Shown here: positions 15,288 to 35,106 of the stretch, one piece after another
How the letters are laid out: every line of letters starts with the position of its first letter
Position numbering within the stretch: the first letter of the stretch is position 1
Assembly: GCA_020536535.1 (NCBI GenBank)
Contig: JAHLWZ010000351.1
Span: 1-64,000, forward strand
DNA length: 64,000 bases
Direction: 5' to 3'
From: Pelomyxa schiedti
Lineage: Eukaryota > Protista > Evosea
Translations under genes and position numbers: made by a program
Notes under the pieces: model-generated
Database searches by the model: none
Told to the model about the DNA's origin: nothing
Seen by the model: only the letters and a program-made list of their open reading frames with translations

Positions 15288-17536
15288 TCAGTGGCTCATC
15301 ATCCACCACAAGGAAGTCAGCCACCTGGTTTCCTTGGCGTTGGTGTCAGGCACCATGTCAGCCATTGTGAGTCCCTCTACGACCCTGAGTGTGGCTTGAA
15401 TGTGAAGGGGTGAGGACATCGCCAGCGCCATGAGATGTTTCTTGATAAACACTGCATTCATTTCTGGGTACACACGCAGAAGCATCTTCCAAGAACTCAG
15501 TGGGAGAATGGTGTCTGATTCCAGGGGTATCGGTACCTTGGGAATCTTTTGCCTCATGTTAGTGCGGTTTATTGGAAATGTATGTTTGACTTTGGGCTTT
15601 GGGCTCATACCTCATCCAGTGTGATATTGAATTTGCGGATTAACCACTCGGCACAATTGGTCTTTTGTCTCCAGAGAAGTGCCGACAACAAGGGCCTGCC
15701 ACACCCTTTTACTTGTTCATCATTCAACTGAAAGTGGTTGAGAAGCCACCTGACAACTTTTCCAGATGCAACACCACCGGTTGCCAGACCCTCAGCAACG
15801 TCTTGTGGTGTGAAATTGCCATGTGACAGAACCTGTGTGACCTGTGAACTATCTGCACTTAAAACAACTTGCCCGACAGCATGAAACCTCAGACCAGGGT
15901 GAAATGATAAATTGAATGTGTCCAACTTGAGAAATGCCGTCTTGAAACAGCAGTAATTCAGGTCTTTTTCCACTGCTTCATGTACTGCATTTTTGCTGAT
16001 ATTGCAGAGTGCAACATTGGAAAGGAACCACTGCGCACCTTGGGGAGAATTGATGCACGGGAGCATGGAATTTGCCTCGCTGGGGTCCGCATTCAAACTA
16101 GCCATCACATGGAATGTCTTTTCTAACCAATCGGCAATAGCAGTATTGCCGTGATCAAGGGCGTTCTCAAGGCATCTGTAGAGTTGTTGCGTTGTGGGCG
16201 GAGCACCTCGTGGTAGCAGGGCTCTCACAACTGACACGCTGTCTTTGTCATTTCCACATGCTGCTATGAGTGTGCTTTCGTCAACACTCGTACTGGCTGC
16301 GCTGAAGAATGTGGAGAGCCACAGAAGGAATTCTGTGCTCTCCGAATTTCTCAAGGCATGCAATAGGTCACCCACAGTTGGTGTGAGATTAAAACTTTTC
16401 ATGACCCATTTGAAGGCCTTCTCCTTGCGGACGCAGTTGTACAGCTCATATTTCTCTGTCACTGAGAAAGAATCTTTGATCCACTGGCACCCTTCTTCAA
16501 TTTGGCTCTCATCGTGTGAGGAACCCCTAATGAATGCTGACAAAATTCTACCTCCAACAGAAGGATCCCTGTTTTGTCCATAGAACCACTCAGTGCACCG
16601 CTTCACAACTTCCAAGCTTGGTGTGTCAAAGAAATTTCCCATGCCCCACCGGGAAGTTTTCGTTGCAGTTATGCAGGCGTTCACAACGTCAGTTGAGGAT
16701 CCCAACCACTCCACAACATCAATATGCCCCCGAGTCACCGCACCGTGAAATGGTTCAACAAGCTCCCATCCCTCGCGGCCCACGCCGAATGTTGACATCA
16801 CCCACTTCACAGACTCCAGGTTCCCTCCTCGGCATGCATCGCACAGCAAGCTTTTTGCCGCCACTCCACTTGCGTCCTTGATTTCATCCATCAGATCAGG
16901 GTCATTAACAGGCCATGACAGCGGAACACCCCGCCAACATGTCGGCGTATCAGATGCATTCTCACTTCCGGTTTGAACAAGTTCTTGTGCCATGGCAACA
17001 TGTCCACCTGAAAGCAAGTTGCAATTAAGATATGTTTGTATCATGTGATTCACAATTGTGAATACTATATAAATGCTCCCCCAAGTAGAGCCAAAATCTA
17101 AAAAAAGCAAAATACCATAACAGAGCCCCCTGAGCACAGTGAGGCAATCTTTCTTCATTCTTTGCGGGGTTGTTGTCCCACCGGTGGCCTCGCGCTCATG
17201 CATCAGGATCCATTTTAGGCACCTCACGCTCGCCGCTCTCCCCGCGCACTTCAACGCGACGTAGCGCGACGCACACAGGTGCTGCATGTCCTCGTCCTCG
17301 TCGTAGTTCGTCAACACGCGCAGTGACGCTCGGCAGGCGCGCGGGACCAGGGGGAAGAGGGCATCCGCGACCTGGAAGGTTCTCACGTGGTCGATTATGG
17401 GAGCGGCAGAGGCCGGCCACTCAGGTCCCAGAACGTAAGGCACTACGACGTGGTCCCAAACGATGCGCGAAATGAGGAGCAAATGCGATACCCGGGAGTC
17501 GTTAGGAAATCGTTCCGGTGGCAACAGATTGCACAT
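15288..17536 (-). CDS. Divergent ankyrin-like helical-repeat protein
   Basis: Long ORF with repeated ankyrin-like cores (ACRGGNLESVKWVM, AVTRGHIDVVEWL, ALDHGNTAIADWL). In-frame 108-nt intron at 17008-17115. The C-terminal 15288-15608 segment is in another frame, joined by an intron or a frameshift. Confidence 0.65.
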
Positions 17537-18707
17537 TTTCGAAAGAAACGACCTCTCAAAAACTTTCCCAGAAACACAAAGACGAACGAAAACCACCGCA
17601 CCGGGTTATAAAATTGGTGCGCCCCTGGATACTTCGTAGACTCAACTTCAGTGTCAATTCGTACGACGATTGCAATTCGCGTGCAACGTCCGCGGGAATG
17701 AAATGAGAGGGAGGCGCCCAGTGACGTTGTATTTTTTCATTATTCCCCCACTAAACGGATGACGCGTGTTGGTATGCATGTATATTGTGCTTCCACACAA
17801 ACCTTCACACAATTCCACCGCATTGTCAACCAGGGTAAAGTTGTTTCCGCACCACAGTATCTATGGACTAACAACCGCAGAATTCATGGCACAACAATTA
17901 TCTGAGGAGTTTTTGTACACTTGTCCCGCGGGTCAGAAATTCAGAAATATTGCCAGCCCTATCCACAAAAATTTTGAGGCAGTGGCCCCAGCCAATGCGG
18001 AACCTCGGAATAGCAGTATTCGGGGCAGTTCATTGGGATCCCACAAGGACTGGACTGTAAAACAAGTAAGAGCAATCCCACACTCCAAATAGATAGCACA
18101 ATGTTCAACTCACATAGAAAGAATACGCCGGACCAGGCCCCACACCGAGAAACAAGTTCAGGTTGATTTAGCCCCATCAAGCCTTCTCGAAATTTTTTCC
18201 TTTCGACCCATCATACATCTTCAGGTGCAAATCTTGGGTTTAACAGATGGCGTGATATGACAAAACTCTGTGCAGTGGGTCTTGTCATGAAAGGACCCAT
18301 TATCCCAGGTCAATTTGCCGCAAGTGGGAAAATCATACACACGGCGTATGCCCCAAGAGGAGAAAAAAACAAAAATAAGATTCCTCGACGTAAAAACATC
18401 GCAGGGAAAAAAAGGTCAATGACCCCAAAGGCAACCCCCAAGCCTGGACCCTCACCCCCGAGCCCCCCAAAAGCACGAAACCCCAGGGTGAGTCCCAACC
18501 TGCTGATGTGGTTCCAAGAACGAGTCTTTTCCGCACCAGAGTCTCCTCAACACCCCAAAAGAAGTCAAAGAAAACCCGTCCGACGTGTCTCTTTTTGTGG
18601 GAAGACAAAATGGTGTGGAACGAAAAAATAATAAAGGGAAAAAAATGGATGTTTTTTCTTCTCCCAAATGGTACTACACGTGTCTTTCTTCATAGCATTT
18701 ATTACCC

Positions 18708-21700
18708 TCAACTGTCTGTTGGGGATGCATAGAGAGAGCTGTTTGTCATTCCACCTGTATTCTCGTATATTGGGTTGGTTGTGGTGCTTGATGCCGTGCC
18801 ATCCAACAATGAGTTGGGGATGTACCAGTTGGCTCCGTATCTGATGTGCTGTAATTTGAGGGGTATCAGTGTGATGCATACAGTCAACTCAAAAAAAAAA
18901 AAAACCTTGTATAGGAAGAAGCCAGCAACTGCTGCAGCGGCACAACCAATTGTTACTCCAATGATGGTCCCTGTGGCTATAAGAGAGTTTGTTGTAACTT
19001 GGGCATTGCATTTGGATGAATCCCAAACATCCCCTCCACAGTTGCCACAGGCATCATTTGTCTTGTTGTCATAACTTCCATCACATCCTATGCAAGAGGA
19101 GTTTCCATTGCAAATACCACACGCATCATATTCCTCCATTGAATTTGGAACTCCTGGCAACTGCGGTTTAGTACTGGAGGGAAAAGTACATTCCAAACTC
19201 TCTTACCATCACATCCCATGCAGGTAGAATTGTTGCCGCCGCAAATTCCGCAGGCATCCCACTGTTTCCCACTCCATAGTTTTGTGTCACAACCGATACA
19301 GGCGATGCCATCTCCACCACACACGCCGCATTGGTCATATGTCATTCCAGACCAGGCAGTCCCATCACATCCAACGCACATATTATCTCCTCCGCAGACA
19401 TTGCACCTGTTGCGGAGGGACCACAGGAGGAATTAGTCCAAAGGAATCGGAAAAGCTTTCACATACAAGTCATATTCAGCGCCGGACCAAGCAATGAAAT
19501 CACAGCCGAAGCAGAGATTGGTCTCGTTTGCCGTTAGGGGACAGTTTCCACACAAATCATACTGAAGATTCCCAGGTTTTCCGTCACAACCTAGGCATTG
19601 ATTTGTGCCACCACATATTCCACATTTATCAACTATCTTGAAGTGACTTGTAAGTGAGAAATCATACAGTTATTTCGGACATACAAGCATTGAAAATGGT
19701 ACGAAGTCACAACCGAGACATGTGTTGTTTCCAAGGCACACGCCACATTGATCATACTGGCTTCCAGACCATGGTACATTATCACAGCCTAGACATTCGT
19801 TGTCTCCACCACATACAAAACAGCTTAATCAGAAATTTAGACACAGAACAAGTGGGAAAAGGGATTATCAGGCATATACCGGTCGTATTTCTTGTTTGAG
19901 AATGGAACATAATCACAACCATAGCATGTATTGTTACCGCCACAGACTCCGCATTTATCATAGGGAAGATTTCCAGGTAGTCCATCACAGCCAATGCATT
20001 GATTTGAACCACCACAGATTCCACATTTATCCTCAACCTGTTCAAATGCTTAATCTAGTCGAAGGTATGGAATGGAAGCCGTACCACCCCTGAAAATGGT
20101 ACATAATCACAACCCAAACAGGTATTGTTCCCTGCGCAAACGCCACAGAAATCATAAGTCTGATAGGAGAATGGTACGTCGTCACATCCTACACACTCAT
20201 TGGTCCCTCCACATACTCCGCACCTGAAACTCTAATTCAGACAAGGCTGAGGAGAAAAAACGATACTTATCAATAGCCTTGCCAGAAAAAGGAATGTAAT
20301 CACATCCCAGGCAATCGTTCATGTATGTAGGGTCATCAGTGCAGTTTCCACACTCATCGTAAGCAAGGTTTCCTGGAAGTCCATCACATCCAATGCACTC
20401 GTTGGAGCCCCCACATATGCTGCATTTATCAACCACCTAGCTTTTTGTAAGGTACAAAAAAATACTGAAATTCGTTGACACACCAAGCCAGAGAAGGGCA
20501 CATTATCACAACCAAGGCAACTGTTGTTTCCAGCGCAGACACCACACTGGTCATAAGTCAGTGCGCTTGGTTTTCCATCACAGCCGAAGCACGAATTATG
20601 TCCACCACATTCACCACATTGGTCAACGGTTACATTTGAAAAAGGCTTTCCATCACACTGCACACAAGAATCATTTCCTGAGCAGATGCCACACTAACGG
20701 AGGAAATGAGAAGAAAAAGAAGATAGTCACCTACAAACCTGATCATAAACTTTCCCACTGAAGCAAACACCATCACAGCCAAAGGCTCGGTCCTCTCCAC
20801 CACATATTCCACAGTCATCCAGAACTTTTCACCTTTAGTTTTAACATAAAGAGAAAACAGGATACCCTTCCCACTGAACGGAACTTTGTCACAGCCCCAG
20901 CAGGCATTCGTCCCATCACAGACTCCGCACTGGATTTAATTTAGAAAAAGATTATAGATCAAAGAAAGAACCTCACCTCATCGTACTGTCTTCCAGAGTT
21001 TAGTATACCATCACATCCCATGCAGGATCTATTGAACTTTCAGATGGGAAAACTGAAAAAAAGAAAGAGCAGTACGAGCCATTGCCTCCACAGACTCCAC
21101 AGACATCAAATTGAATAGGATCCCAGATGACTCCATTGCACCCAAAGCATGCCCTATTTCCACCACAGATTCCACAAACGTCGTAAGTCTTTCCACTGTA
21201 AAGAACGCCATCACAGCCCACACAAGCATCAGTGCCAAGGCAAACATCACATTTGTCCACTTGTGCTCCACTCCACGGTTTTCCGTCACAGCCGATGCAC
21301 GCAAGCTCGGATGGATTATTCGTGCAGTCACCACATCTAACATAGGACACAATTTCAGTGGAGGTGAAAGAGAGAAAAAGGAGAGAAACGTGTCATAAAA
21401 CCAGCCAGAATTTGCTACGCCATCACATCCAACACAATCTTTTCAGGGTAAATAAGAGTAACCAGAATTAGTTAGAATTATGCACCATTTGCGCCTTGAC
21501 AAACACCGCATTTGTCAACTGTTGCTAGTGACCAAGGGATCCCTGCAAGAATATGAATGGGAGCATATACAGTAAGAAAAAGATGTACCATCACATCCAA
21601 CACAAGAGAGACCAGTTCCACCACACAGTCCACACTGGTCATACTGACGACCTGAGTATGCAACATGATCGCACCCAAAGCAAGAGTTCTGCACATACAG

Positions 21701-24700
21701 GTTGTTAATCTCGCCGCCAGTCATAATGGAAGTTACTTACATTTCCGTGGCAAACAGAACAGTTATCGTACACGGCCCCACTAAACGCCACGTTGTCACA
21801 CCCCACACAGTCGTTCATTTCAACATCGCCTGGTTGAACGCATTGACCGCATCGGTCATACACATATGGCCCATAAGGAATTCCCATGCAATCCTCGCAT
21901 GCGTTTGTACCCTGGCATACAGCTATGACATTTGATTGTTGTTTATTTTTGAGCGAGTGAGTTCACCATGGGGCGACAAATAAAGAAGCATACAGCAGTT
22001 GTCAAATGTAGCGTGGGACCACTTGATGCCATTGCACCCCAAGCATTCCAGGCCCGAACCACCACAAACACCGCACTGGTCATATGTCAACGGGGGGACA
22101 GTAGCACGCCCATCGCAGCCAATGCACCTTGATGTGTAGGTTTGGGTGTAAGAGTCAATAAGTTGCCAGGCTATACATTTACACTAGTACTACACAAACA
22201 GCCACAGCAAATAAAGGCACTTTTCCCACAAACGTACTTGTTTGTTCCGTTGCACACTCCGCACTTGTCCCAGCTTGCCTTCCCATAAGGCGTTCCGAAG
22301 CAATCAATGCACGACGTGCCGTTTCCCCCGCACACACCGCACTGGTCGTACTAGCAGACAAAGTTAGTGGTGAAGATCAGGATCAAGAAGAAGATCGATC
22401 GTGCAGGAAACACATACGGCGGCAGGGGGCACTGTGTAAAGGTAGTCACATCCCATGCACGCGTTGGTTCCACCACATACTCCGCAGTTGTCATTATGCT
22501 TGTTGCCATACGGAACCTGCTGGCAATCCAAACCTGATTGGTGAATGTGAGTGTTCTATGTGGAAGCCAACTGTGTGTGGCATCTACTTACTACTAGTAC
22601 TAGTAGTAAGTAGGACTGGGTGGCTACATACAGGCGTTTGTGCCGTTGCAGACTCCGCACAGGTCGTACCTGTTGTGTGACTGGTTGGTGATGGGAATAC
22701 AGAATGATGAATGGGGGATCACATTGCCATGACTGGGGTTCCAAAGCATCCGTAGCACGTGGAATTGTCGCCGCCGCACACTCCACATGCATCCACTTTG
22801 GCGTGGCCATTCAGGTTTCCGTAGCAATCCAGGCACGATGTCCCTGAGCCTCCACATATTCCGCATATATCCACCACTCTGATGTTCAAAAAAGGAGGAG
22901 TTGCAGTTAACTCTTAACTGTCAGAAGCTTATTTACTCACGTTATTCCGTAAGGAACACCCTTGCAATCCAAACATTGATTCGAATCCGCCAGTGTAACG
23001 CATATCTGACACTTGTCCATAATTTTCCCAGAGTTCACAACATGGTCGCAACCTTCGATTCCTCAGAATTATTCTATGATACATTATTTGCTTACCGTAA
23101 CAGGGGAATACACTATCCACTACAATGGTTGCAACACCCCATCCAAGGACATTCAAGTAAATCGTTGTATTATGTACGGCAGTTCTATGGCAATGTAAGT
23201 ACTAAGGTCATGTTTTCTAAGGCTACGTTGCAAGTAATTTCACATTGAAGATGTAGGTATTGTAGGGCGTTACACTTGTGTAAGTGGATGGAGAGATTGA
23301 CTGGACATAGCCGTATGTATCTGTAGCAACCACCATCTGAAGAGTGTTACTAATAAAACCTGGTGTAAGTAACTTACAGTTAGTGTTGAAGCAAGCACAC
23401 TAAGACCCTGCAAGATATAGGGGACAACATTGGAGCTATCTGATGCGATCAAAAACACATTCCCGTAGCTACATCAAAACGTTAGAAAAGCTGATTCCCT
23501 TGAGGACTGAATTACCCAAATGAAGTGATCAAAGAATTATACTGACTCATCACTGAGGTAGTATAGGAACCTCCATCGTTGATAATTCCAAACACAGGGT
23601 ATATGTTTGCGCCCTTGATGTGTGTAGTGAGAGTCGCCACAGAAGGATAGTCTTCGCCTTATGTACATGTAAGTGCACCCGAAAAAAAAACCTGAAGTAC
23701 CTGTGCCATAATACTGGCATTGATTAACTGTATTGCCAGCTGCATCTAAAATTACACCTACAGGATAGCACGGCGGAGTCATGCAATCATCCACGCAATC
23801 ATAGTTATTTGCTGGTAAATAGGCGAGAGATGTCTGTCCACTAGCAGCTTGACATTGATATTTGTTCTCTTGTGCATAATGGAAGTTGGCATCCGTTATT
23901 GTGAAAAACATCTAATAGGCAAAGGTAAGTTTTACAAGTGAGCACACTGACGGACCTTCAGGGAATTTGTTCTCCAGCCATACTTCCCCTGCATGTTGCA
24001 AGTTGCCTGCGCAAGCGGAACAAGTTGTGACTCGGGTCCATCATAGCCCCATCCAATCACAGTTTCCTGAGCGCTTATTAGTTCAAGCCGAAGAGGATGG
24101 AATGTGCTTACTGCCACTTTCGCCTGCAAGGCATTGTAACTATTCTGCAGGGGTGCTAGGGCCCAGAAGTCATTATCTACTGCTGCCATAGAACCCCAAT
24201 CCCCTGAGTACAGGACCGGCTTGTCTCCAAACGTGTTGTAGGCAAAATTGGCCTGAGGCCTAGAACTCCGGACTTGTGATATGATCCGCGGAATAAGCAT
24301 GGCAACCATTTGTACATCTGGTGTCATACTGCCCGTGATATCCTGTTTCCTGGTGATTTGAAATGCCATCTTTTGGGAAAGAACCTGACTGATCCAAAGA
24401 TCAAGAGACTGCAGCTCAGAAGGTGGTACATAAACACTGATTGGAACCGTAAGAGCTTGATTAGGCACAAGAAAAACTTCTGTTATTGCTGGATTGATCT
24501 ATGTGGCGTTGGGATTACGGTCATAAGGCATAGTAACAGGAACGAACAGGTGAGCCCGTTGTGTTCCACACAATCTGACTTTGTTGGTACCACCAAGTTC
24601 CATTTGAACAAGACCCAGAAGAAGGCCCTGAATTCCACATCAGGAAACAAAACAGACGCAGAAAAACCAATCCAGCACAGAGTCAGATAGACATACACAC

Positions 24701-24890
24701 CTGATGCAGTTCCAGCCATGCACTTTCCAGTTCCAGTGCACCACCCACACCCAGTCGTGGCCACGCAGGAAGTGCACACTCCGTATGTGCACGCTCCCAG
24801 CACCCCCACGGCTGCTCCCATAATTACAACTACAACCATCGCCGTAACCGCCATCGTAACCGACAAGGGTATCGCCCTCTGTGTAGGCAT
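18708..24890 (-). CDS. Integrin-beta-like type I membrane protein: signal peptide, PSI, beta-I/VWA domain, long Cys-rich stalk, TM, NPxY tail
   Basis: Signal peptide MPTQRAIPLSVTMAVTAMVVVV. PSI-like CTSCVATTGCGWC. Beta-I motifs DITGSM, FGDKP, DGPES, YGWR and TDANFHY. Many GCDG...DxCGxC repeats. TM IIGVTIGCAAAAVAGFFLY and cytoplasmic NPIY at 18765-18776. Confidence 0.85.
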
Positions 24891-25165: not shown

Positions 25166-28100
25166 ATGGCAAAGGGTAGGGGCACAAAGTTATACTATTC
25201 AACGTAGTGGTTAACATTAGTAAAACAAGAAGCGTTTCGACTTGTATTTGTGGTTCTGTGTGCAACATGCACTGTTGGCCTTCTGCCGTCTATATTCCTT
25301 GAGGCTGAGTATTGGACGTCGGCAGGTTCGTGGTCAAGAACTACTTCCACATCGGAGTGGGACTCTTGCGGCCAGTATATCTACACAACGACAAACGGCG
25401 GAACGGCGGTGACATACACTTTTTCCGTTTCACAGTAAGTGGGAGAATTTTCTGTTATGACACGTTGGTAAGCTTCACACCTCTCAAGAGCTGGAACATA
25501 CAATTTGTGGATACTTTCGAGAATTCCAAACAATCCGAAGGGTGCCTCACTCTGGGTTCAGTTTGATTCGGTGAGTAAATGAGTCCTTTCCTCCAGTTTT
25601 TGACTGTTCTCTTTTCAAGCAACCCAAAGTTGACTGGGACTTGTATATTTTTGGGAACTCTTGGAGGCAAGTCACAAATGTAACTCTATCGACTGGGAGC
25701 CATACTCTTGCCATCACAATGAGGTAAATGGGTTACAAAGAATACCATTCTTAACTTGGTTCAGAAAGTACTCTGCTCAGCTTCAAATGGATAAGATTCT
25801 GATCACGGATATGTCCACTCCCAAGATGGGTTACTCAAACAAAGGAAAGACAGCAGCTAATATTCCCTCTGGCTCTTATTGTATTGTCCCCTCATTTCTT
25901 CATCCCAAGCCCTAATATGTATTTCAGGTCAGCAAGTATATTTAGAAGTATGTCGACTCGAAATTGTTGCCCCCTATTATCTATCTGAACAACCACACAG
26001 GCGGAATTTGGGACAAACCCCGGATCACCTGTCACATTAGCAGGGCTTTCAACTGCCTCCATGTCCGGGGCACTGTACAAAAACGCAGCAACAACCACCA
26101 CTTGCAGCACTTCGTCCAATTACGTACAGGTAATTTTTGCTCCACTTGTGACATCACTAACGAATATTTAGTTCACAGTGACTTGGGGTGAGTCTGTGTA
26201 CAGGCCTGTTTGGTTCAGGGTCATGGCCCCTACGTCGTCGTACAATCAGTTCACAATTTATGTGTGTAGGCAACACCATTTTGCAAGTCTACACTGAGTC
26301 TCACCACAGAGCACAAATTGCGGAACGAATTATGGCACTCTGACTGTCTCCAAACCTTCACAAGAGTTTCAATGGGTCAACGTGCGTCCCCTCCTCTCCC
26401 AATTTCTGTATTGACGACGTGCAATGACTTTCTCGTCCAGTTTGGATCCCTTATCAACCTGCCCAACTCGTTCCTGGTGACGTTCGTCACAGGGTACACC
26501 TACCTCGACAAAATCTACATCGGTTGGGGAATTCCGCTCACCAACGGCTCCATCGCCAACCTCCCATCATCAAGTATGGATATTCCTCGAAAGACCATCA
26601 CACAACGCAACTTTTTTTTGACGAAACGACAGGTTCTTCTTGTAGCACGTACAATGGACTGTGCTCTCCCGTAACCACATGCAGCGCAGGGCCAACGTGC
26701 TCTGCTTGTCCCGTGGGCTATCAAGGCTGTGGCAACATCAACACCTGCAATCCGCCTTATGGGTGCGTCCGCACGGTGCCGTTCGGCTGCTACTTTGACA
26801 GAAGCGTGTCACAATTTGGCTATACCGACGTTGCTTCGTTCCCGACTGGCGCGAGCACGGTTGAATTATGGGCGTCGGCTGCGCCCTTCCTGGCGACTGG
26901 GGATTCATCTGTTATCTACTATCAGAGCTCCAGTGGGTCTTGGGTGTACCAAATTCGATACAATCCAAGTCTGGGTCTATATTTGTGTGTTATTTATTTC
27001 CCCATTCCAAGATCCATTTCCCTTTGGTTTTTTCAGTTTTTACTGTTTTACTGAGATTTTTTGCTTGGTTGTGTTACTGTTGTTGATGAATTCAAGGTAC
27101 AATGGTGGAACTGCAATTAAGCCATCAACTCCAATCATTCTTCCTTTGGATATCTGGACACATATTGCCGTGCGTTGCTCCATCTCACCATTGTATTGCG
27201 CCTGATGTGCGTTTTTTGGGCAGATAACCTATGACCTCTCCACAGCAAAGTTTTATGCGAATGGAGCTTTGGTCGCCACTGTTAGCACAAGTTCTGGTGC
27301 TCCGTCCTCTCCTGGTGTGATATCCTTGGGGAAGCCAGTTGGTGTGCCTTCATTCGTGTTTCCTCGAAAAACTTGATTTCTTACCTATACATCAAGCCAC
27401 ATGGTCAACAGACTTGACTCTACCTGCTTTTGGAATTGATGAACTGCGTATCTGGTCTGCAGTGCTCCCTCAAGCAACAATCCAACAAAATATGAATCAT
27501 ACACTCACAACAAGTCAGCCTAATCTAATGCGTATGTGATTACTCCTCCCAAGCTACATATAGAACTCTAACCCAACAAACAATAAAAAAAAAGATGTTT
27601 GGAGTTTTGGTGCCGATAATAGTAACCCTTGTCAACCAATAACCACTGAAACTTTTGGAACTGCAGCAATTACAACTTCACTCACAGAGTGTATGCAAGT
27701 TGAAGTTTACCTTTTTTTGATCTGAAAACAGGGTATTCTCTGCGAAATCTCTATATATCCACTGGCGGGCCAAATTGGAACATGCAAACCAGTTGGTTAA
27801 TTGGCCAACCATGCAGCGGGGCAAATCCTGTATGGTTTGGAATTGACTGCGATACATCAGGGAGTGGCCGCATTTCGACAATGTAAGTAGTATCTGTGGA
27901 ACAAGCGGGAATCTATGAATCTACCCACAATCCCAATAGAAACCTCGCCTACAACAATTTGGTTGGATCCTTACCTGCCAGCTTCTTTGCACCTTTTTCC
28001 AAGCTTTCTATTTTGTATAAAATATCATACCTCTCCCTTCATCTAATTAACTTTAAAACAGAATGCTGGATGATAATTCATTGACTGGACCCATCCCAAT

Positions 28101-31100
28101 GGATATTGGCTTTCTCACAAGTGCTGTTACAATGTACGTACGGGGTTCAGTTCCAAACTTTTCTGATGACATTTGTAGATTAATGCACAGCAACCAATTT
28201 ACCTCGATCCCAACGCAGATTTCACAAATGACATCTTTGCAAAAATTGTACTTTCTTCTGTCTTTTCTATCTTTTCTCATTACTCACTGTTTTAGGTACT
28301 TGCAATACAATCAGCTGTCGGGAACTATTCCAGATGTCTTTTCGACAATGACAGCACTGGTTTTTCTGTATATGTACAACAATTCTTTGACAGGAACAAT
28401 TCCAACTTCATTGAGCACCATCACATCCCTGAAATACCTGTAAGTTTTTGTTTTTTACATCCCCCTGGTTTTGCTAAAGCAACAATCACAGAGATTTGAG
28501 CTACAACCATCTTTCTGGTCAATTTCCACAGGCAATTATCAATAGCCAAATATCTTCCATGTAAATACTATGCCTTCATTTCACTTCGCAATAATCAAAT
28601 ATCCATAAGAAATGTTGCAGGAAACTACTTTTCTGGTCAGTTGCCCAACAGAGCCACAACTGTCAATTCCCAAATGATTTTAATGTACAGTTTCCACTTG
28701 GCTGTTATGTATATTAACAATGGATACCACCACAGGAACTTCACAGACAATGTGTTTACTTGTGAAGTGCCACCCTTCTTCACATTGTCTTCCACAACAT
28801 TCCCTGTCGATGTTCACGGCAGTCTCTTCTTTTGTCCCATAACCAATGTTGTGCAGACCATTCAAGGGATTGCTTGCCGTATGTTCTCCCATGATGATCT
28901 TTTCGTTCTGAGCATAACTTTCAGAACCTGTTACAATGATATCTATTACACCCAACAGTTGGGACTTGTCAGTTGGTTTTGGATCCAAGCCCACTGCCAC
29001 AATCAATGCAACAGGCCTGAACGGGTGCACAGGAATACAAATATTTGTCCCTGGTGTTGGGCTAGTTGCACCAAAAAGTCAAACAACAAACACGCTGGTG
29101 TTTTCAATTCCCTCTCACACTTATGGGATTGTTCCCATCCGGCTCGTGTGGACCGGCACCTACGGCAACAACTCTGTGGTGTCAGCCAACTCACTCAACT
29201 TCAAGTACTATTATCCTTGCCCAGCCTCGTGTGTGTCTCCATATGGGTCCTGTGCTGGACTGAGCGGCCTTTGTGTTTGTAATGGAACACATGGAGGTTA
29301 TACTTTGCCAACAGTGACGTAACACTCACAGAACATAGGGTCTGACTGCCATGGTTGGTCATGCCCCGCAAACTGCAACGGGCGAGGGACATGCAACACA
29401 ACAACTGGAGTTTGTATTTGCACCCCGCCTTATTTTGGCACCTCGTGCAGTGCAGCTCAAATTGCCTGCCCAAACAACTGTTCCAAGTAAATTTCCGTCC
29501 AAAACAGTATCTTTAGAGTTGTAATACTTCCCCTTGAAGGCACGGGCAGTGCAATATTTTCACAGGGGTATGCTCTTGTTATCTTGGTTACTGGGGAAAC
29601 AACTGTGCGAACAAAACATGTCCCCCAAACAACCTTCCCTACTGCACTCCACCACACGGCTGGTGCAATGGCACTTCTGGGAAATGTGTTTGCGCATCTG
29701 GTTGGCTTGGAGCTTCTTGCTCAACACCTGCGAAATCATGCCCTGCCAACTGCACCAATCCAAACTATGGACAGTGCAACCCATCCACTGGTATGCTTCA
29801 AATTAGAAATTAGTTTGTCTCTTTACTTATCAATTCAAAACAAATCAAACAGGGGAATGCACGTGCTTCACATATCAAGGGCTTATCCACGGTGGGCTCA
29901 ACTGTAGTCAAATCATTTGCTCTCCTTCCTGCTTGAATGGTGGCACATGCAACACATCTTCCAGCAAGTGCATTTGCAAACCTAACTACTATGGGACTGA
30001 TTGCTCCGTGCCCAACTTTCCTTGTCCAAAGAATTGCACCAGTTCCAGCAGTGGCGAGTGTAATTCTCAAACAGGCAATTGCTCTTGCCGCTCAGGCCTG
30101 ACGGTAATCACATACAAAGTATTCCCGTCCCTTCAAATTAACTCACCTCGTTCACAGGGCTCAGATTGCTCCATTCACATTTGTCCTGGCACTCCTCAGT
30201 GCAACTCCCCAAATGGAACCTGCAACACAACTGATGGAACGTGCATATGTAGCAGCTTTCCAAGCAAAGGATACTACTTCAATGGGTATATGTGTCAGTA
30301 CAAATACTATTACTGCCCGGGCAGCCCTGAATGCAGCGGTAGCACTCATGGCAGTTGCAATCCTCAAACTGGAAACTGCATGTGTAACTACCCTTGGACT
30401 GCTTCTCTAAATTGTTCGAGTGCTGTCTGTCCCAATAGCTGCTGGGGGCACGGTTCGACTTCAAAAATCCCTTTCTGTATGTCTTGAGCGGTTTACAGTT
30501 TGCAGGTACATGCAATTCTGCCAACGGAAAGTGCATCTGTTGGGAACAGTACAACACCACAGTTGACTGCGAGTTGCTCTACAGTGTGTATTGAACTTTT
30601 TCGTCCCAATAATTCTCACCTCCCTTCACTGCACTTCACTTCACTTTACGATGGTCCAGTTCCATGTTCCCAACCGTGCAACCATGGTTACTGTAATACA
30701 CAGACTGGAATCTGTGTTTGCACATCACCATGGACCAGCACAACATTGGAGCAGTGCAACACTCTGTCTTGTCCTGGAGACTGTAATGGAGGAGTTACTG
30801 GGACTTGCGTGAATGGCACCTGCATCTGTCATACAGGCATTCCAAACCCTGATGTAATCACATTTCCATTCTTAACCTCGAAACAGGATGGACTGGTACT
30901 CAGTGCACCATTCAGAACTTGACATGTGCTGGAGATTGCAGTCCCCCTTATGGACGGTTTGTTGCTCCCTGCACCAGCACCTCCGAGTGCGTCGTTGACT
31001 TATACTCAGGTGTGACACAACAACAGGACTCTGTGGGTGTTACGGTTCTAGCTATGGTTCCAATTGCCAATACAGTATGACACTCACGTCCCATTTATAT

Positions 31101-34100
31101 GAAGCTTCTCACGGAATTGCTAGAATACTGTCTCAGTAACTGTAGTACCCATGGCACCTGTAATATTACGACTGGTGTGTGCAATTGCTCTTCTGGGTGG
31201 CAACCACCGGATTGTTTTGCAAACTTGTGCTCTGATCTGAATTTCTGCACCTCAAGCTACAACGGAAATTGCAACACTACGAGCGGTGTTTGTGTGTGCA
31301 ACAGTGAGTTCTATGGCTTGGAGTGTCAGTACAAGTCGTGTCCTGCAAACTGCTCATTCCATGGCGTGTGCAATAATGCAACGTTTGTTTCGACGTTAAA
31401 GTGGTTGGGTTGTAACACTCACTCAAACATTAGGGGATTGTGCTCCTGCTATTCAGACTACCTTGGCGCCGTATTATTATCCCCTCTTGAGTTCTTCCAT
31501 TTTCTCAGTTTATTCAGATATGTGACGAGTTCTCTGCTGTTTGCCCACCATCTCGTTCTAACGGGTGTTTTGGAAACGGTGTGTGCAACCACACAACAGG
31601 GATGTGCACGTGCTATCCTGGTTTCTTTGGTGCTGAATGCAATTACAGTGTGCAAAAGTTTTAATAAAAACCTCCTCAGTAACCTCGGCACAGCATACTG
31701 CCCAAACAACTGCTCTGGCCACGGAGCGTGCAACTACACAAGTGGTGTTTGCTCTTGTGCTCAGAATTACTCGGATCCCAGCAATCCAGCTTGCAGTGCT
31801 GTTTACTATGCCTGCCCGTATGTTCTTTCATGGCGGCTGGGGGTTGAATTAATCTTCGGGCAGGGATAACCTTTGCTCGGGGAATGGTTATTGCAAGCAC
31901 TCCACTGGTCAGTGCGAATGCTACTCCGGTTTCCACGGGAACGTATGTCAGTACAAGAAGTGCCCTGCAAACTGTTTGGAGCATGGATCGTGTAACGCGG
32001 TATGCCAACCATGAAATCATCTCTGCTGTTCTGTTCTGATTTTGGGGGCAGACAACCGGGGAATGTGTGTGCCAGCCACATTGGCTTGGAGTTTCTTGCT
32101 TGGAAGCCAACTGTAAGTTATCTCGTTCTGAGACTTCTTGTTTATCAACTCTTCCGGCAGATTCGTGCCCCGGCAATTGCTTTGGGACTCATGGATATTG
32201 TGATAAACTGACTGGTCAATGCACATGTTACCAACCCTTTTTGGCTCCTAACTGCCAGTATGGTACGTTCCCACAACCGTGCAATGTATTATTCTAAAGA
32301 AAACGATGAAAGCAACCTGCCTTTTCAACTGTTCCTATCCACATGGTGTCTGCAACAAGTGAGTCGTCCATGATGGATTTTTTATTTCCTTCCATAAGAA
32401 TCCTTATGAATTACTCTTATAGTTTGACTGGCGTGTGTGCATGCAACAGTTCATTTGCTGGAAAGGGTTGCCAGATCGCTAACTTCACGTGCCACCCAAG
32501 TTGCATCAATGGAAATTGCTATTCACTGTATGAGTTTTTGCCAATCAACCCAGAAAGCACCAACAAAATCCCTTCTTTTATTAGGACTGGACAATGCATA
32601 TGCAATGCAATGTATTATGGTCAGGCATGCCAGTACAAGCAATGCCCTGGGAAAACTCCTTGTTCTGGAAACGGTGTATGCAACAACACCACTGGTGTTT
32701 GTGACTGCTCCACCAACTTCACAGGAGTTTCATGTGACATCCCAAACTGTATGCGCCAATAACACAAGACCCATTGCCGCCTCTCAAATTCGTTTGCACA
32801 TAGACAAGTGCCCCAATAACTGCAGTGGTACACATGGACACTGTGACCCGAACAAAGGTCAATGCATCTGTTATTCTCCCTGGACTCTTCCAGACTGTCT
32901 TGAAGGTAAGAACTGGAGAAATATATAACTATCATCCACTCATTCGTTCTGGTTTAGGAAGTTGTCAGTTAAACTGTTCTTACCCGCACGGCGTTTGCAA
33001 CACGTTTGTTTTCCTCGCTTACGTTACTTATTATGTGGTTACACCTTCATTTGTATATTTAAACAGTTCGACGGCTGTTTGCACTTGTGCTCAGAATTAT
33101 ATTGGCAAAAGCTGTCAGATTGCCAACTTCACTTGCCACCCAGCGTGTCTGAATGGGACATGCAATACTCTGTGTGTAAAATACGCTGTTGTTCGTGGTT
33201 TTCATTGACCCCTTTGTGGCATAGGGTCGGAAAGTGCATATGCAATGGCGGGTATTGGGGAGATATTTGCCAATATAAAACCTGTCCCACAAATTGCCAG
33301 ATTCATGGAGTCTGCAACAACGTATTAAATACATTTTATGAGCATTTCTTCCTGCCAACTTGATACTCCAGTTCACTGGAATATGCCATTGCAGCCAGAA
33401 TTGGACTGGTGCTAATTGCATGGAGGCAAACTGTATGTGATATCTCGAAAATCAATGAGGCAACGCTCAAATGATGTCCATCTCTTCAGATTCTTGCCCG
33501 AAGAACTGCTATGGGTCCCGTGGGCATTGTGACGCGACATCTGGCAAATGTTCTTGCTATTCTCCATGGACTCTTCCCGCATGTGAATTTGGTACTTTTT
33601 CCTTTCCTTCCATCCATTCATTTCAACTCACGAGTGCCCACACATACATAAGCTACCTGCACACTCAATTGCTCATATCCAAATGGGGTCTGTAACATGT
33701 ATGCATTTATTATGATTTCGAGTATCTCCTTCTCTTACGCACAAACTCTTAAAGACACACTGGAGTTTGCAAGTGTGAACCAGATTGGACAGGAAAAGGC
33801 TGTCAGATACTGAATCTGACATGCTCCCCTCCGTGTATAAATGGTGCTTGTGATTCAGGGTATGGATGGAATCTTTTTGCGTGACCAATTTTCTCTGACT
33901 TCATGCAGAACTGGAAAGTGTGTATGTCAAGCCGGGTACTTTGGGGACACCTGCTTGTACAAACAAGTGTGTTCGAGTTTTTTTTTACTGTTGGAATCTC
34001 CAACTCAACAGCTCACAGTGCGGAGGTAAAACCCCATGTTCCAGCCATGGTATATGCAATAATCTCACTGGAACTTGTTCGTGTGATCCCCACTACGACG

Positions 34101-35106
34101 GGAACTACTGTGAAATTCCTGATTGTTTGTCAACGATTATCATCTCTCCATTGTCAGTTAATTTCTTTCAGTTCCTTGTCCTAATAACTGCACGAGTGCT
34201 TCCCGTGGATCCTGCAATACTCAAACAGTTAGTATAAACTGTGATTATCCCAACATAACACACTTAACAGGGACAGTGCCTATGCCGCTATCCCTACTAC
34301 GGAACAAACTGTTCGCTGAGTAAGGCTTCATTTCCTTTCCTTTTCCTGGCCGTTCCTAAAACTTTTCCAGTGAAATGTCCCAACAACTGCAGAGGGCATG
34401 GAATCTGCAATTCTACAAACGGTGTTTGTATCTGCAACTCTCCGTACCTGCCCCCGGATTGCTATTTCAGTTTGTATCCCGTTCTCCACCTTCCATTTTC
34501 CCATAACCACACACATTAAAATCAACCAGTGTCTTGCCCGCTTAATTGTTCTGGTCATGGAACCTGCAATCCATTCACCGGCAAATGCACGTGCAAACCC
34601 TCTACCGAGTGGACAGGGCTCAACTGTTCCATCAGTAACAAACTCCCCTCCTTTTCTCTCCCCTTATCTTAATGCATCTTGCATCTTCTATGACATTCAT
34701 CATTACCATCCACACCCAACCCAACTGAGCACACTTTCGCACGCCAACACAACTTTCCCGCAGTCTGTTATCTACTATCTGATATCTACTAATATCCTCA
34801 CCCACTCATTCACTCACAGGAGAGTGCCCCAACAGCTGCAGCAACGCAGGGAAGTGCAACCAAGCGACGGGCAAATGCAATTGCCACACGGGGGCCAAGG
34901 GCTCCGACTGCTCGGGCGAGAACTGGTGGATCATCGTCGTGTGCGCCGGAGGCGGCACGGCCCTCGTGGTCGGCGGCGCCACGGCCGGCTTCGTGGCGGT
35001 GCGCCAGATGCGGATCAACAACGCGCGGTCCAGGCGCGCCAAGAACTCCGCGAGCTACGTGGACATGGACCCCTTGTCTGCTAGCGGTGGGGCGGGCACT
35101 CATTGA
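25166..35106 (+). CDS. Giant single-pass surface protein: CBM-like, LamG/ConA-like, plant-type LRR, IPT/TIG, more than 25 tenascin-type EGF repeats, TM, short tail
   Basis: A 45-nt intron (25176-25220) gives MAKVKQEAFRLVFVVLCATCTVG. LamG motifs WTHIAV..YANG and IDELRIW. LRRs LAYNNLVGSLP and LQYNQLSGTIP. IPT-like ISITP...FKYY. Repeated CPxNCSxHGxCNxxTGxCxC. TM WWIIVVCAGGGTALVVGGATAGFVAV; stop at 35106. Confidence 0.85.

Follow-up and report, generated by a model that had tools for sequence, protein, structure and literature searches.

An integrin-beta-like gene with a long stalk of cysteine modules in the archamoeba Pelomyxa schiedti

Does the anaerobic amoeba Pelomyxa schiedti encode an integrin beta subunit, and what kind of stalk would carry its head away from the membrane? 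The question is raised by a gene on the minus strand of contig JAHLWZ010000351.1 (assembly GCA_020536535.1), of which positions 1 to 64,000 were analysed (hereafter the window; all coordinates are window positions). The original prediction, made from the nucleotide sequence, had read this gene as a receptor of type I that resembles integrin beta and has a stalk of non-EGF repeats, a description borne out here by profile searches, by comparison with structures in the PDB and by homologues. The gene very likely encodes an archamoebal integrin beta subunit of the amoebozoan 'Type I', and this identity, taken together with the way of working proposed below, is likely to be the best explanation of the locus.

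The motifs of the PSI and beta-I domains that had been predicted were all found at their places on the minus strand and in integrin order (Table 1). As a test of the head exon by exon, we used a profile made of non-amoebozoan Integrin_beta domains only (panda beta-4, together with proteins matched to the beta-4 domain whose source is not named). Exons 3-8 matched this profile in order, at profile positions 4-38, 39-109, 113-146, 151-178, 186-223 and 227-253, with scores of 0.2, 33.9, 13.9, 4.3, 25.3 and 13.0 bits that sum to about 90 bits, the highest score among 1563 control pieces of the remaining window being 6.8 bits. A family profile built from amoebozoan heads and the window exons, with no animal sequence in it, was run against the PDB, where integrin-beta chains filled all 60 of the matches shown (the last being an integrin beta-2-like protein) with a best E of 1.3e-28. 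The head thus matches integrin beta and not generic VWA domains, as had been predicted.

Homologues were sought by an exhaustive search of 1.84 billion proteins with a stop-free head piece of 181 aa; a word-index protein search with a 181-aa head piece gave no match, and single head pieces compared with the PDB by phmmer gave nothing useful. The closest proteins in the exhaustive search were both from P. schiedti, namely P0001 (KAH3744682.1, 1368 aa) and P0002 (KAH3759353.1). The top match, P0001 (E 6.7e-30, 59% identity), aligned 148 of its residues to 181 of the query, which indicates that it lacks approximately the residues of two presumed in-frame introns (14 and 15-17 aa) retained in the query piece. 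P0001, P0002 and a Mastigamoeba balamuthi protein, P0006 (EukProt EP00727_P004613, 1302 aa), are each tiled by the ten head exons in colinear order, at identities of 54%, 43% and 34%, respectively; on P0001 the alignment has small gaps within some exons. On these three homologues the Pfam Integrin_beta model scored 76, 82 and 52 bits, each time above vWA_SIBA-E, and its match extended over the full length of the model for P0001 and P0006 and over half of it for P0002; no generic VWA was listed by Pfam for any of the three. Among the PDB matches shown, the head of P0001 matched integrin beta chains only, with an alignment to beta-2 residues 77-424, a span which we take to include both halves of the hybrid domain. 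Exons 3, 9 and 10 tile those portions of P0001 that align to these presumed hybrid regions of beta-2.

These comparisons also bear on a different reading of the head, in which it is a generic VWA or Sib-type domain whose integrin-like motifs are convergent. That vWA_SIBA-E also matches the closest homologues at 39-54 bits, and that single exons give sub-threshold matches only (such as VWA_4 with 11.7 bits on exon 4), would fit such a domain. The higher score of Integrin_beta on every homologue speaks against it, as do the PDB matches shown, all of them integrin beta or integrin-beta-like, the colinear score on a profile free of amoebozoan sequences and the apparent PSI and hybrid flanks; convergence is thereby largely refuted and appears extremely improbable.

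The metal sites of the head were examined residue by residue, with residues assigned to sites as in beta-3. The metal ion-dependent adhesion site (MIDAS) motif is a DxTxS variant of DxSxS, and E217 and D249 are present. In the synergistic metal-binding site (SyMBS), D168 and D-x-P-E (here D-G-P-E) are kept and the Asn two residues upstream is changed to Gly, while in the site adjacent to MIDAS (ADMIDAS) the TPD that follows the MIDAS motif keeps one of two Asp (PD for DD). In the alignment with beta-4, the head keeps most of the metal-site residues (D-T-S, E and D of MIDAS; D and D-x-P-E of SyMBS; one Asp of ADMIDAS), and all three sites can be recognised in it, with variants.

The stalk of the receptor consists of tandem cysteine modules. 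The unit consensus GCDGxxxSGxxxDxCGxCGGxxxC proposed in the original prediction is correct and the long array is real, but the estimate of 30-35 units of about 25 aa has to be raised to 37 units of 24-30 aa. Each module reads CxGC-D-x-x-P-x-S-G-x-x-Y-D-x-CGxCGG-x3-9 and has four Cys (149 Cys in total), and all module Cys are kept but one, in a module that has AFGC where P0001 has ALGC. Intact CGxC..CxxC units number 26 in 4.4 kb, against four loose look-alikes in the remaining 57.8 kb, and shuffling of the stalk region gave a mean of 0.02 intact units. The units share 60-76% identity as DNA, and Tandem Repeats Finder (TRF) called no tandem array in the stalk region, as the units are too diverged at this level. 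Since the units have diverged in DNA, TRF finds no array and further contigs (described below) hold the same stretch, the array is not an assembly artefact. A four-module super-repeat of about 400 nt including introns occurs in three copies at about 19525-20440 (minus strand) with about 70% DNA identity. The block (GCDG[LK]PGN) has three copies in the window gene against two in P0001, and the additional four modules would account for the count of 37 against about 33 in P0001. Stalk length therefore seems to change by duplication of blocks.

We looked for known folds among the modules. On the stalk, Pfam ADAMTS_CR_3 scored 28.2 bits on its last 27 columns only, matches being confined to the last 27-35 of 115 columns (81-115 or 89-115), and no Pfam match to EGF or Integrin_B_tail was obtained on stalk pieces. 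The AlphaFold run that had been suggested for the repeats yielded, from an input alignment of 68 in-register segments, an AF2 model of 3.4 modules with a mean predicted local distance difference test (pLDDT) of 86.7, with one short helix and otherwise isolated beta-bridges. A significant structural match to the model as a whole did not emerge. Foldseek against the PDB gave a single local match, of one module to the cysteine-rich domain of ADAMTS13, which is not significant (E 2.1), and VIA-align against 48,161 chains gave none at Z >= 2; in the ESM Atlas, unnamed metagenomic clusters matched at template-modelling scores of 0.70-0.75. The module array as a whole matches no solved structure by Foldseek against the PDB or by VIA-align. 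Its likeness to the ADAMTS cysteine-rich domain (PF19236; ADAMTS13, PDB 3ghm) lies in CGVCGGDNSxC and in the superposition of one module over 24 residues (0.6 A, 42% identical); the full 115-column domain is, however, not matched and no ADAMTS is known to carry a tandem array.

The curated model of the gene has a coding sequence of 4464 nt (1487 aa) with no stop inside, and all of its introns are GT-AG and short (41-110 nt, mean 54). Several of them are in frame, such as 24384-24343 ahead of DITGS and 18905-18849 after the transmembrane (TM) helix, and are hence invisible to a reading by open reading frames (ORFs); several such introns, 24384-24343 included, had gone unseen in the original prediction. 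Our first model, obtained by a three-frame reading and a splice dynamic programme, itself retained in-frame introns and was mis-spliced in four places, which were fixed by intron enumeration and homology. The final model also uses the joints found in RNA and gap-free tiling on P0001. By itself, the dynamic programme found six of the seven RNA joints and misplaced one of the six by 3 nt, in frame.

RNA evidence came from the Logan contigs of one single-cell RNA-seq run of the same study, and long unspliced contigs were available from three more runs (run type not on record), all of a single sample that may be the source of the window. The contig comparison reaches up to 24699, and 24700-24890 lies outside it. 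Seven joints in the RNA contigs read CT..AC on the plus strand (GT..AG in the direction of the gene), and none of the seven occurs in the contigs of the three further runs. An eighth intron, 20437-20483, is backed by a loose RNA contig end at 20481 that runs into the next exon. At least the 3' half of the gene is transcribed and spliced. In one RNA contig 18849-18905 is removed and the TM exon thereby joined to the exon that carries NPIY, so that TM helix and NPxY tail, as the original prediction required, are both present in RNA. The three further runs jointly contain the compared stretch and two have all of it in one piece; the sole difference, found in two of the three contig sets, is a 21-nt insertion with A>C at 22360-22362, which falls inside intron 14 and has no coding effect.

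It might still be asked whether the locus is a decaying paralogue (a pseudogene) or a mis-assembled repeat. No annotated entry for the full-length protein was present in the searched protein collections, and the RNA contigs extend over only about half of the compared stretch, at low depth and with two odd non-canonical joints, all of which could be expected of such a locus. The 33 exons are nevertheless read without a stop, all Cys of the 37 modules but one are kept, the RNA is spliced, further contigs of the same sample contain the stretch and the repeats have diverged at the DNA level, and with these on the other side we regard decay or mis-assembly as barely credible.

The two odd joints, 21437>22630 and 22661>22943 (skips of 1192 and 281 nt), were considered as introns and rejected as not being splicing, their sides spanning only 21 and 32 nt in a single high-depth contig. 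This contig (21437-22943, with long loose ends) is probably a paralogue transcript or a repeat chimera.

Beyond the stalk, the TM helix, NPIY and the distal SSLY follow each other as predicted (Table 1), although SSLY is not an NxxY motif. The 46-aa tail matches that of P0001 with E 2e-24; it begins with K-HIRYGANWYIPN, and LLxxxHDRKE is not there. All five of the amoebozoan tails compared (window gene, P0001, P0002, P0006 and P0010) have a membrane-proximal G(A/T)NW(Y/F)(I/L)P; it is more conserved than NPxY, which is kept in the window gene, in both Pelomyxa proteins and in one metagenomic relative but not in M. balamuthi. Talin binding by this tail is plausible; in Dictyostelium, SibA is an NPxY receptor through which talin transmits force (PMC12686525). 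The receptor might then work as follows. The head would bind an extracellular ligand via a divalent cation; the disulfide-stapled modules would make up a stretched-out rod and so keep the head at a great distance from the membrane, which the four-I-EGF leg of animal integrins would not nearly reach; and the tail would couple to actin via a talin-type FERM adaptor at NPIY and/or GANWYIPN, which would yield adhesion to a substrate or to particles. We give a talin-coupled mechanism of adhesion an even chance. Prey capture, as put forward in the original prediction, would likewise be a possible role.

Several observations weigh against the identity or the mechanism. When the gene was scanned exon by exon, no single exon rose above a Pfam cut-off: Integrin_beta reached at best 15.5 bits, on exon 7 alone (profile positions 181-211), and PSI reached 21.1 bits on exon 1, just short of its cut-off of 23.1, scores that stay low because single exons are too short; the profile search that had been proposed as a check therefore gave sub-threshold matches on single exons together with the colinear sum described above. 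At the metal sites, Thr replaces the first MIDAS Ser, one Asp of ADMIDAS is altered and so is the Asn of SyMBS. RNA contigs do not cover 23100-24699, so the splicing of the head is derived from homology. The tail has no HDR(R/K)E, the alpha-clasp motif of animals. The distance from Trp to Tyr is 8 residues in beta-3, and here the Trp stands 18 residues ahead of the NPIY Tyr. Moreover, as the M. balamuthi homologue has no NPxY and yet has GANWYIPN, NPIY may not be the key site.

How far the integrin beta of P. schiedti differs from known systems depends on the relative chosen. Metazoan integrin betas (such as beta-2, PDB 5e6r_B) share with it the apparent order PSI-hybrid-beta-I, the metal-site motifs DYPS and DSSNV, one TM helix and a tail with NPxY, but they have four I-EGF domains and a beta-tail domain in place of the 37 CxGC..CGxCGG modules, possess the HDRK/RE clasp motif that is absent here, and have a shorter Trp-to-NPxY spacing. 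Dictyostelium SibA-E have a VWA-type head, a TM helix and an NPxY tail as well, and adhesion by Sib is talin-coupled (PMC12686525); unlike the window gene, with its apparent PSI domain, metal sites and Cys stalk, the Sib proteins have neither the three motifs for cation binding nor the cysteine-rich region, according to Kang et al. (bioRxiv 10.1101/2020.04.29.069435; published 2021). Closest in kind are the amoebozoan Type I ITGB proteins described by the same authors, which combine PSI and a vWA/beta-I head having MIDAS and SyMBS with the stalk motif DxCGxCGGx3-6CxGC, a TM helix and a tail that has NPxY and is without LLxxxHDRKE. The window gene falls within this type: its 37 modules fit the motif, and its TM helix and NPIY are present and joined in RNA. 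The motif is stated to occur 3 to 7 times in Type I ITGB, in contrast to 37 times here and about 29-33 times in archamoebal homologues.

As the family, the stalk motif and the NPxY tail had thus been published, they are not new in kind and the window gene is a further member. The claim that an I-EGF stalk had been 'replaced' holds in so far as there is no EGF match and 37 other modules stand in the stalk, while its novelty was overstated, the motif being that of the published amoebozoan stalk. The same survey, which did not include Pelomyxa, noted stalk expansion in breviates and reported from the M. balamuthi genome an ITGB, two ITGA genes and a near-complete adhesome (Kang et al.); our literature search found no paper that connects Pelomyxa with integrins. 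P0001 and P0002 have the same architecture as the window gene end to end, with about 33 and about 29 modules, respectively. The M. balamuthi ITGB, with about 30 modules, shares the apparent PSI domain, a DVTGS MIDAS, a TM segment ending in ..AGFFLYK and GANWYIPN, and differs by its head, which is 34% identical, and by its tail without NPxY. The window gene, for which there is splice evidence, adds a well-supported genomic case in favour of NPxY-tailed integrin-beta receptors being older than animals, and it shows that archamoebal integrin betas have stalks of about 30-40 modules where the literature gives 3-7; the known picture is unchanged in kind. Such an array might place the ligand-binding head much further out than an animal stalk does, which bears on how a naked amoeba reaches its substrate or prey.

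Two observations on the P. schiedti relatives concern their records. Both KAH3744682.1 and KAH3759353.1 are named 'exocyst complex subunit 4' at NCBI. In the model of P0002 the NPVY tail is followed by another TM segment and by PDEase_I, an extension that could come from the merging of gene models or from a true fusion.

The integrin beta gene has a giant neighbour that is divergently transcribed and lies head-to-head with it at all three loci examined, that is in the window and at the two other P. schiedti loci, L001 and L002, from which P0001 and P0002 share this arrangement with the window gene. The gene pair of the window is colinear as DNA with L001, the locus of P0001, where the giant carries LamG3, LRR and EGF_TEN. 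As Kang et al. reported a 'tenascin ORF' on the ITGB scaffold of M. balamuthi, the pairing perhaps also exists in Mastigamoeba, and integrin beta and giant may form a co-regulated pair. The head-to-head neighbour is not an integrin alpha, and no search aimed at an alpha subunit was made over the remaining window or the genome.

This gene context suggests another view of the receptor, in which the integrin-beta homologue is no part of an alpha/beta heterodimer and works alone, like Sib, or with the giant LRR/teneurin-EGF protein, the gene pair being the functional unit. The constant head-to-head position (with gaps of about 450 bp at the P. schiedti loci), the colinearity of the paired genes with L001, the 'tenascin ORF' of M. 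balamuthi and the tail without an alpha-clasp motif would suit this view, and both integrin subunits are present in few amoebozoans only (PMC12686525). ITGA genes do exist in M. balamuthi, however, and the linkage may be no more than a product of block duplication, at least in Pelomyxa; we consider a lone or neighbour-partnered subunit rather unlikely. A bolder proposal is that the two genes make up a receptor pair, regulated and duplicated together and conserved from Pelomyxa to Mastigamoeba, that the extracellular partner is the giant instead of an integrin alpha, and that the CGxCGG rod is a spacer of undescribed structure, tuned in length through the duplication of blocks; taken as a whole, this is unlikely. 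The conserved GANWYIPN and the pairing with a giant surface protein are testable leads on how pre-metazoan integrins were coupled inside and outside the cell. The coordinates of all features are collected in Table 1.

Table 1. Positions of the integrin beta gene, its parts and its giant neighbour (window positions unless a locus is named).
Feature	Position	Strand	Basis or remark
Whole integrin-beta gene, from ATG at 24890	24890 to 18708	-	33 exons, 32 introns
Exon 1: putative PSI, first part (C..C..C.....CGWC.....C), preceded by signal peptide (hydrophobic residues ~12-33)	24701..24890	-	Pfam PSI; aligns to N-termini of P0001/P0002/P0006
Exon 2: putative PSI end and hybrid domain start	24548..24627	-	64% identity to P0001 across exon
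Exons 3-10: putative hybrid domain with beta-I inserted	23096..24498	-	Integrin_beta profile matches, exons 3-8
MIDAS motif DITGS	24328..24342	-	aligns with DFSNS (beta-4), DITGS (P0001), DVTGS (M. balamuthi)
FGDKP	24217-24231	-	direct reading
YDGPE, SyMBS/MIDAS loop	24031..24045	-	aligns with LDAPE of beta-4
GWR	23971-23979	-	direct reading
TDANFHY, strand with last MIDAS Asp	23876..23896	-	homologue alignment
EDYPS, integrin-beta hallmark DYPS	23641..23655	-	alignment and profile
DSSNVV (integrin-beta DSSNV)	23423..23440	-	alignment
Stalk: 37 tandem modules, 24-30 aa each, aa 455-1407	19008..23102	-	direct count on model
TM helix, aa 1416-1440, GxxxGxxxG	18909..18983	-	direct reading; near-identical in P0001
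57-nt in-frame intron between TM exon and tail exon	18849..18905	-	RNA joint 18848>18906; not in DNA contigs
Introns removed in RNA	18849-18905, 19407-19466, 19824-19879, 20038-20084, 20224-20266, 20694-20738, 20825-20865	-	RNA contig joints
Exon 33: 46-aa cytoplasmic tail and stop codon	18708..18848	-	72% identical to P0001 tail
GANWYIPN	18813-18836	-	tail comparison
NPIY	18765-18776	-	direct reading
SSLY	18729-18740	-	direct reading
Stop codon	18708-18710	-	direct reading
Giant gene, LRR and EGF_TEN/EGF_2 pieces at 28-35 kb	~25300-35100	+	Pfam-type domain pieces
Giant gene, P. schiedti copies	L001:738-9533; L002:1480-9557		LamG3 also called; gap to integrin ~450 bp

On the other side of the integrin beta gene, with no exact protein on record, an ORF of 663 aa without introns lies directly downstream at 15605-17596 (minus strand), which is unusual for an intron-dense genome.

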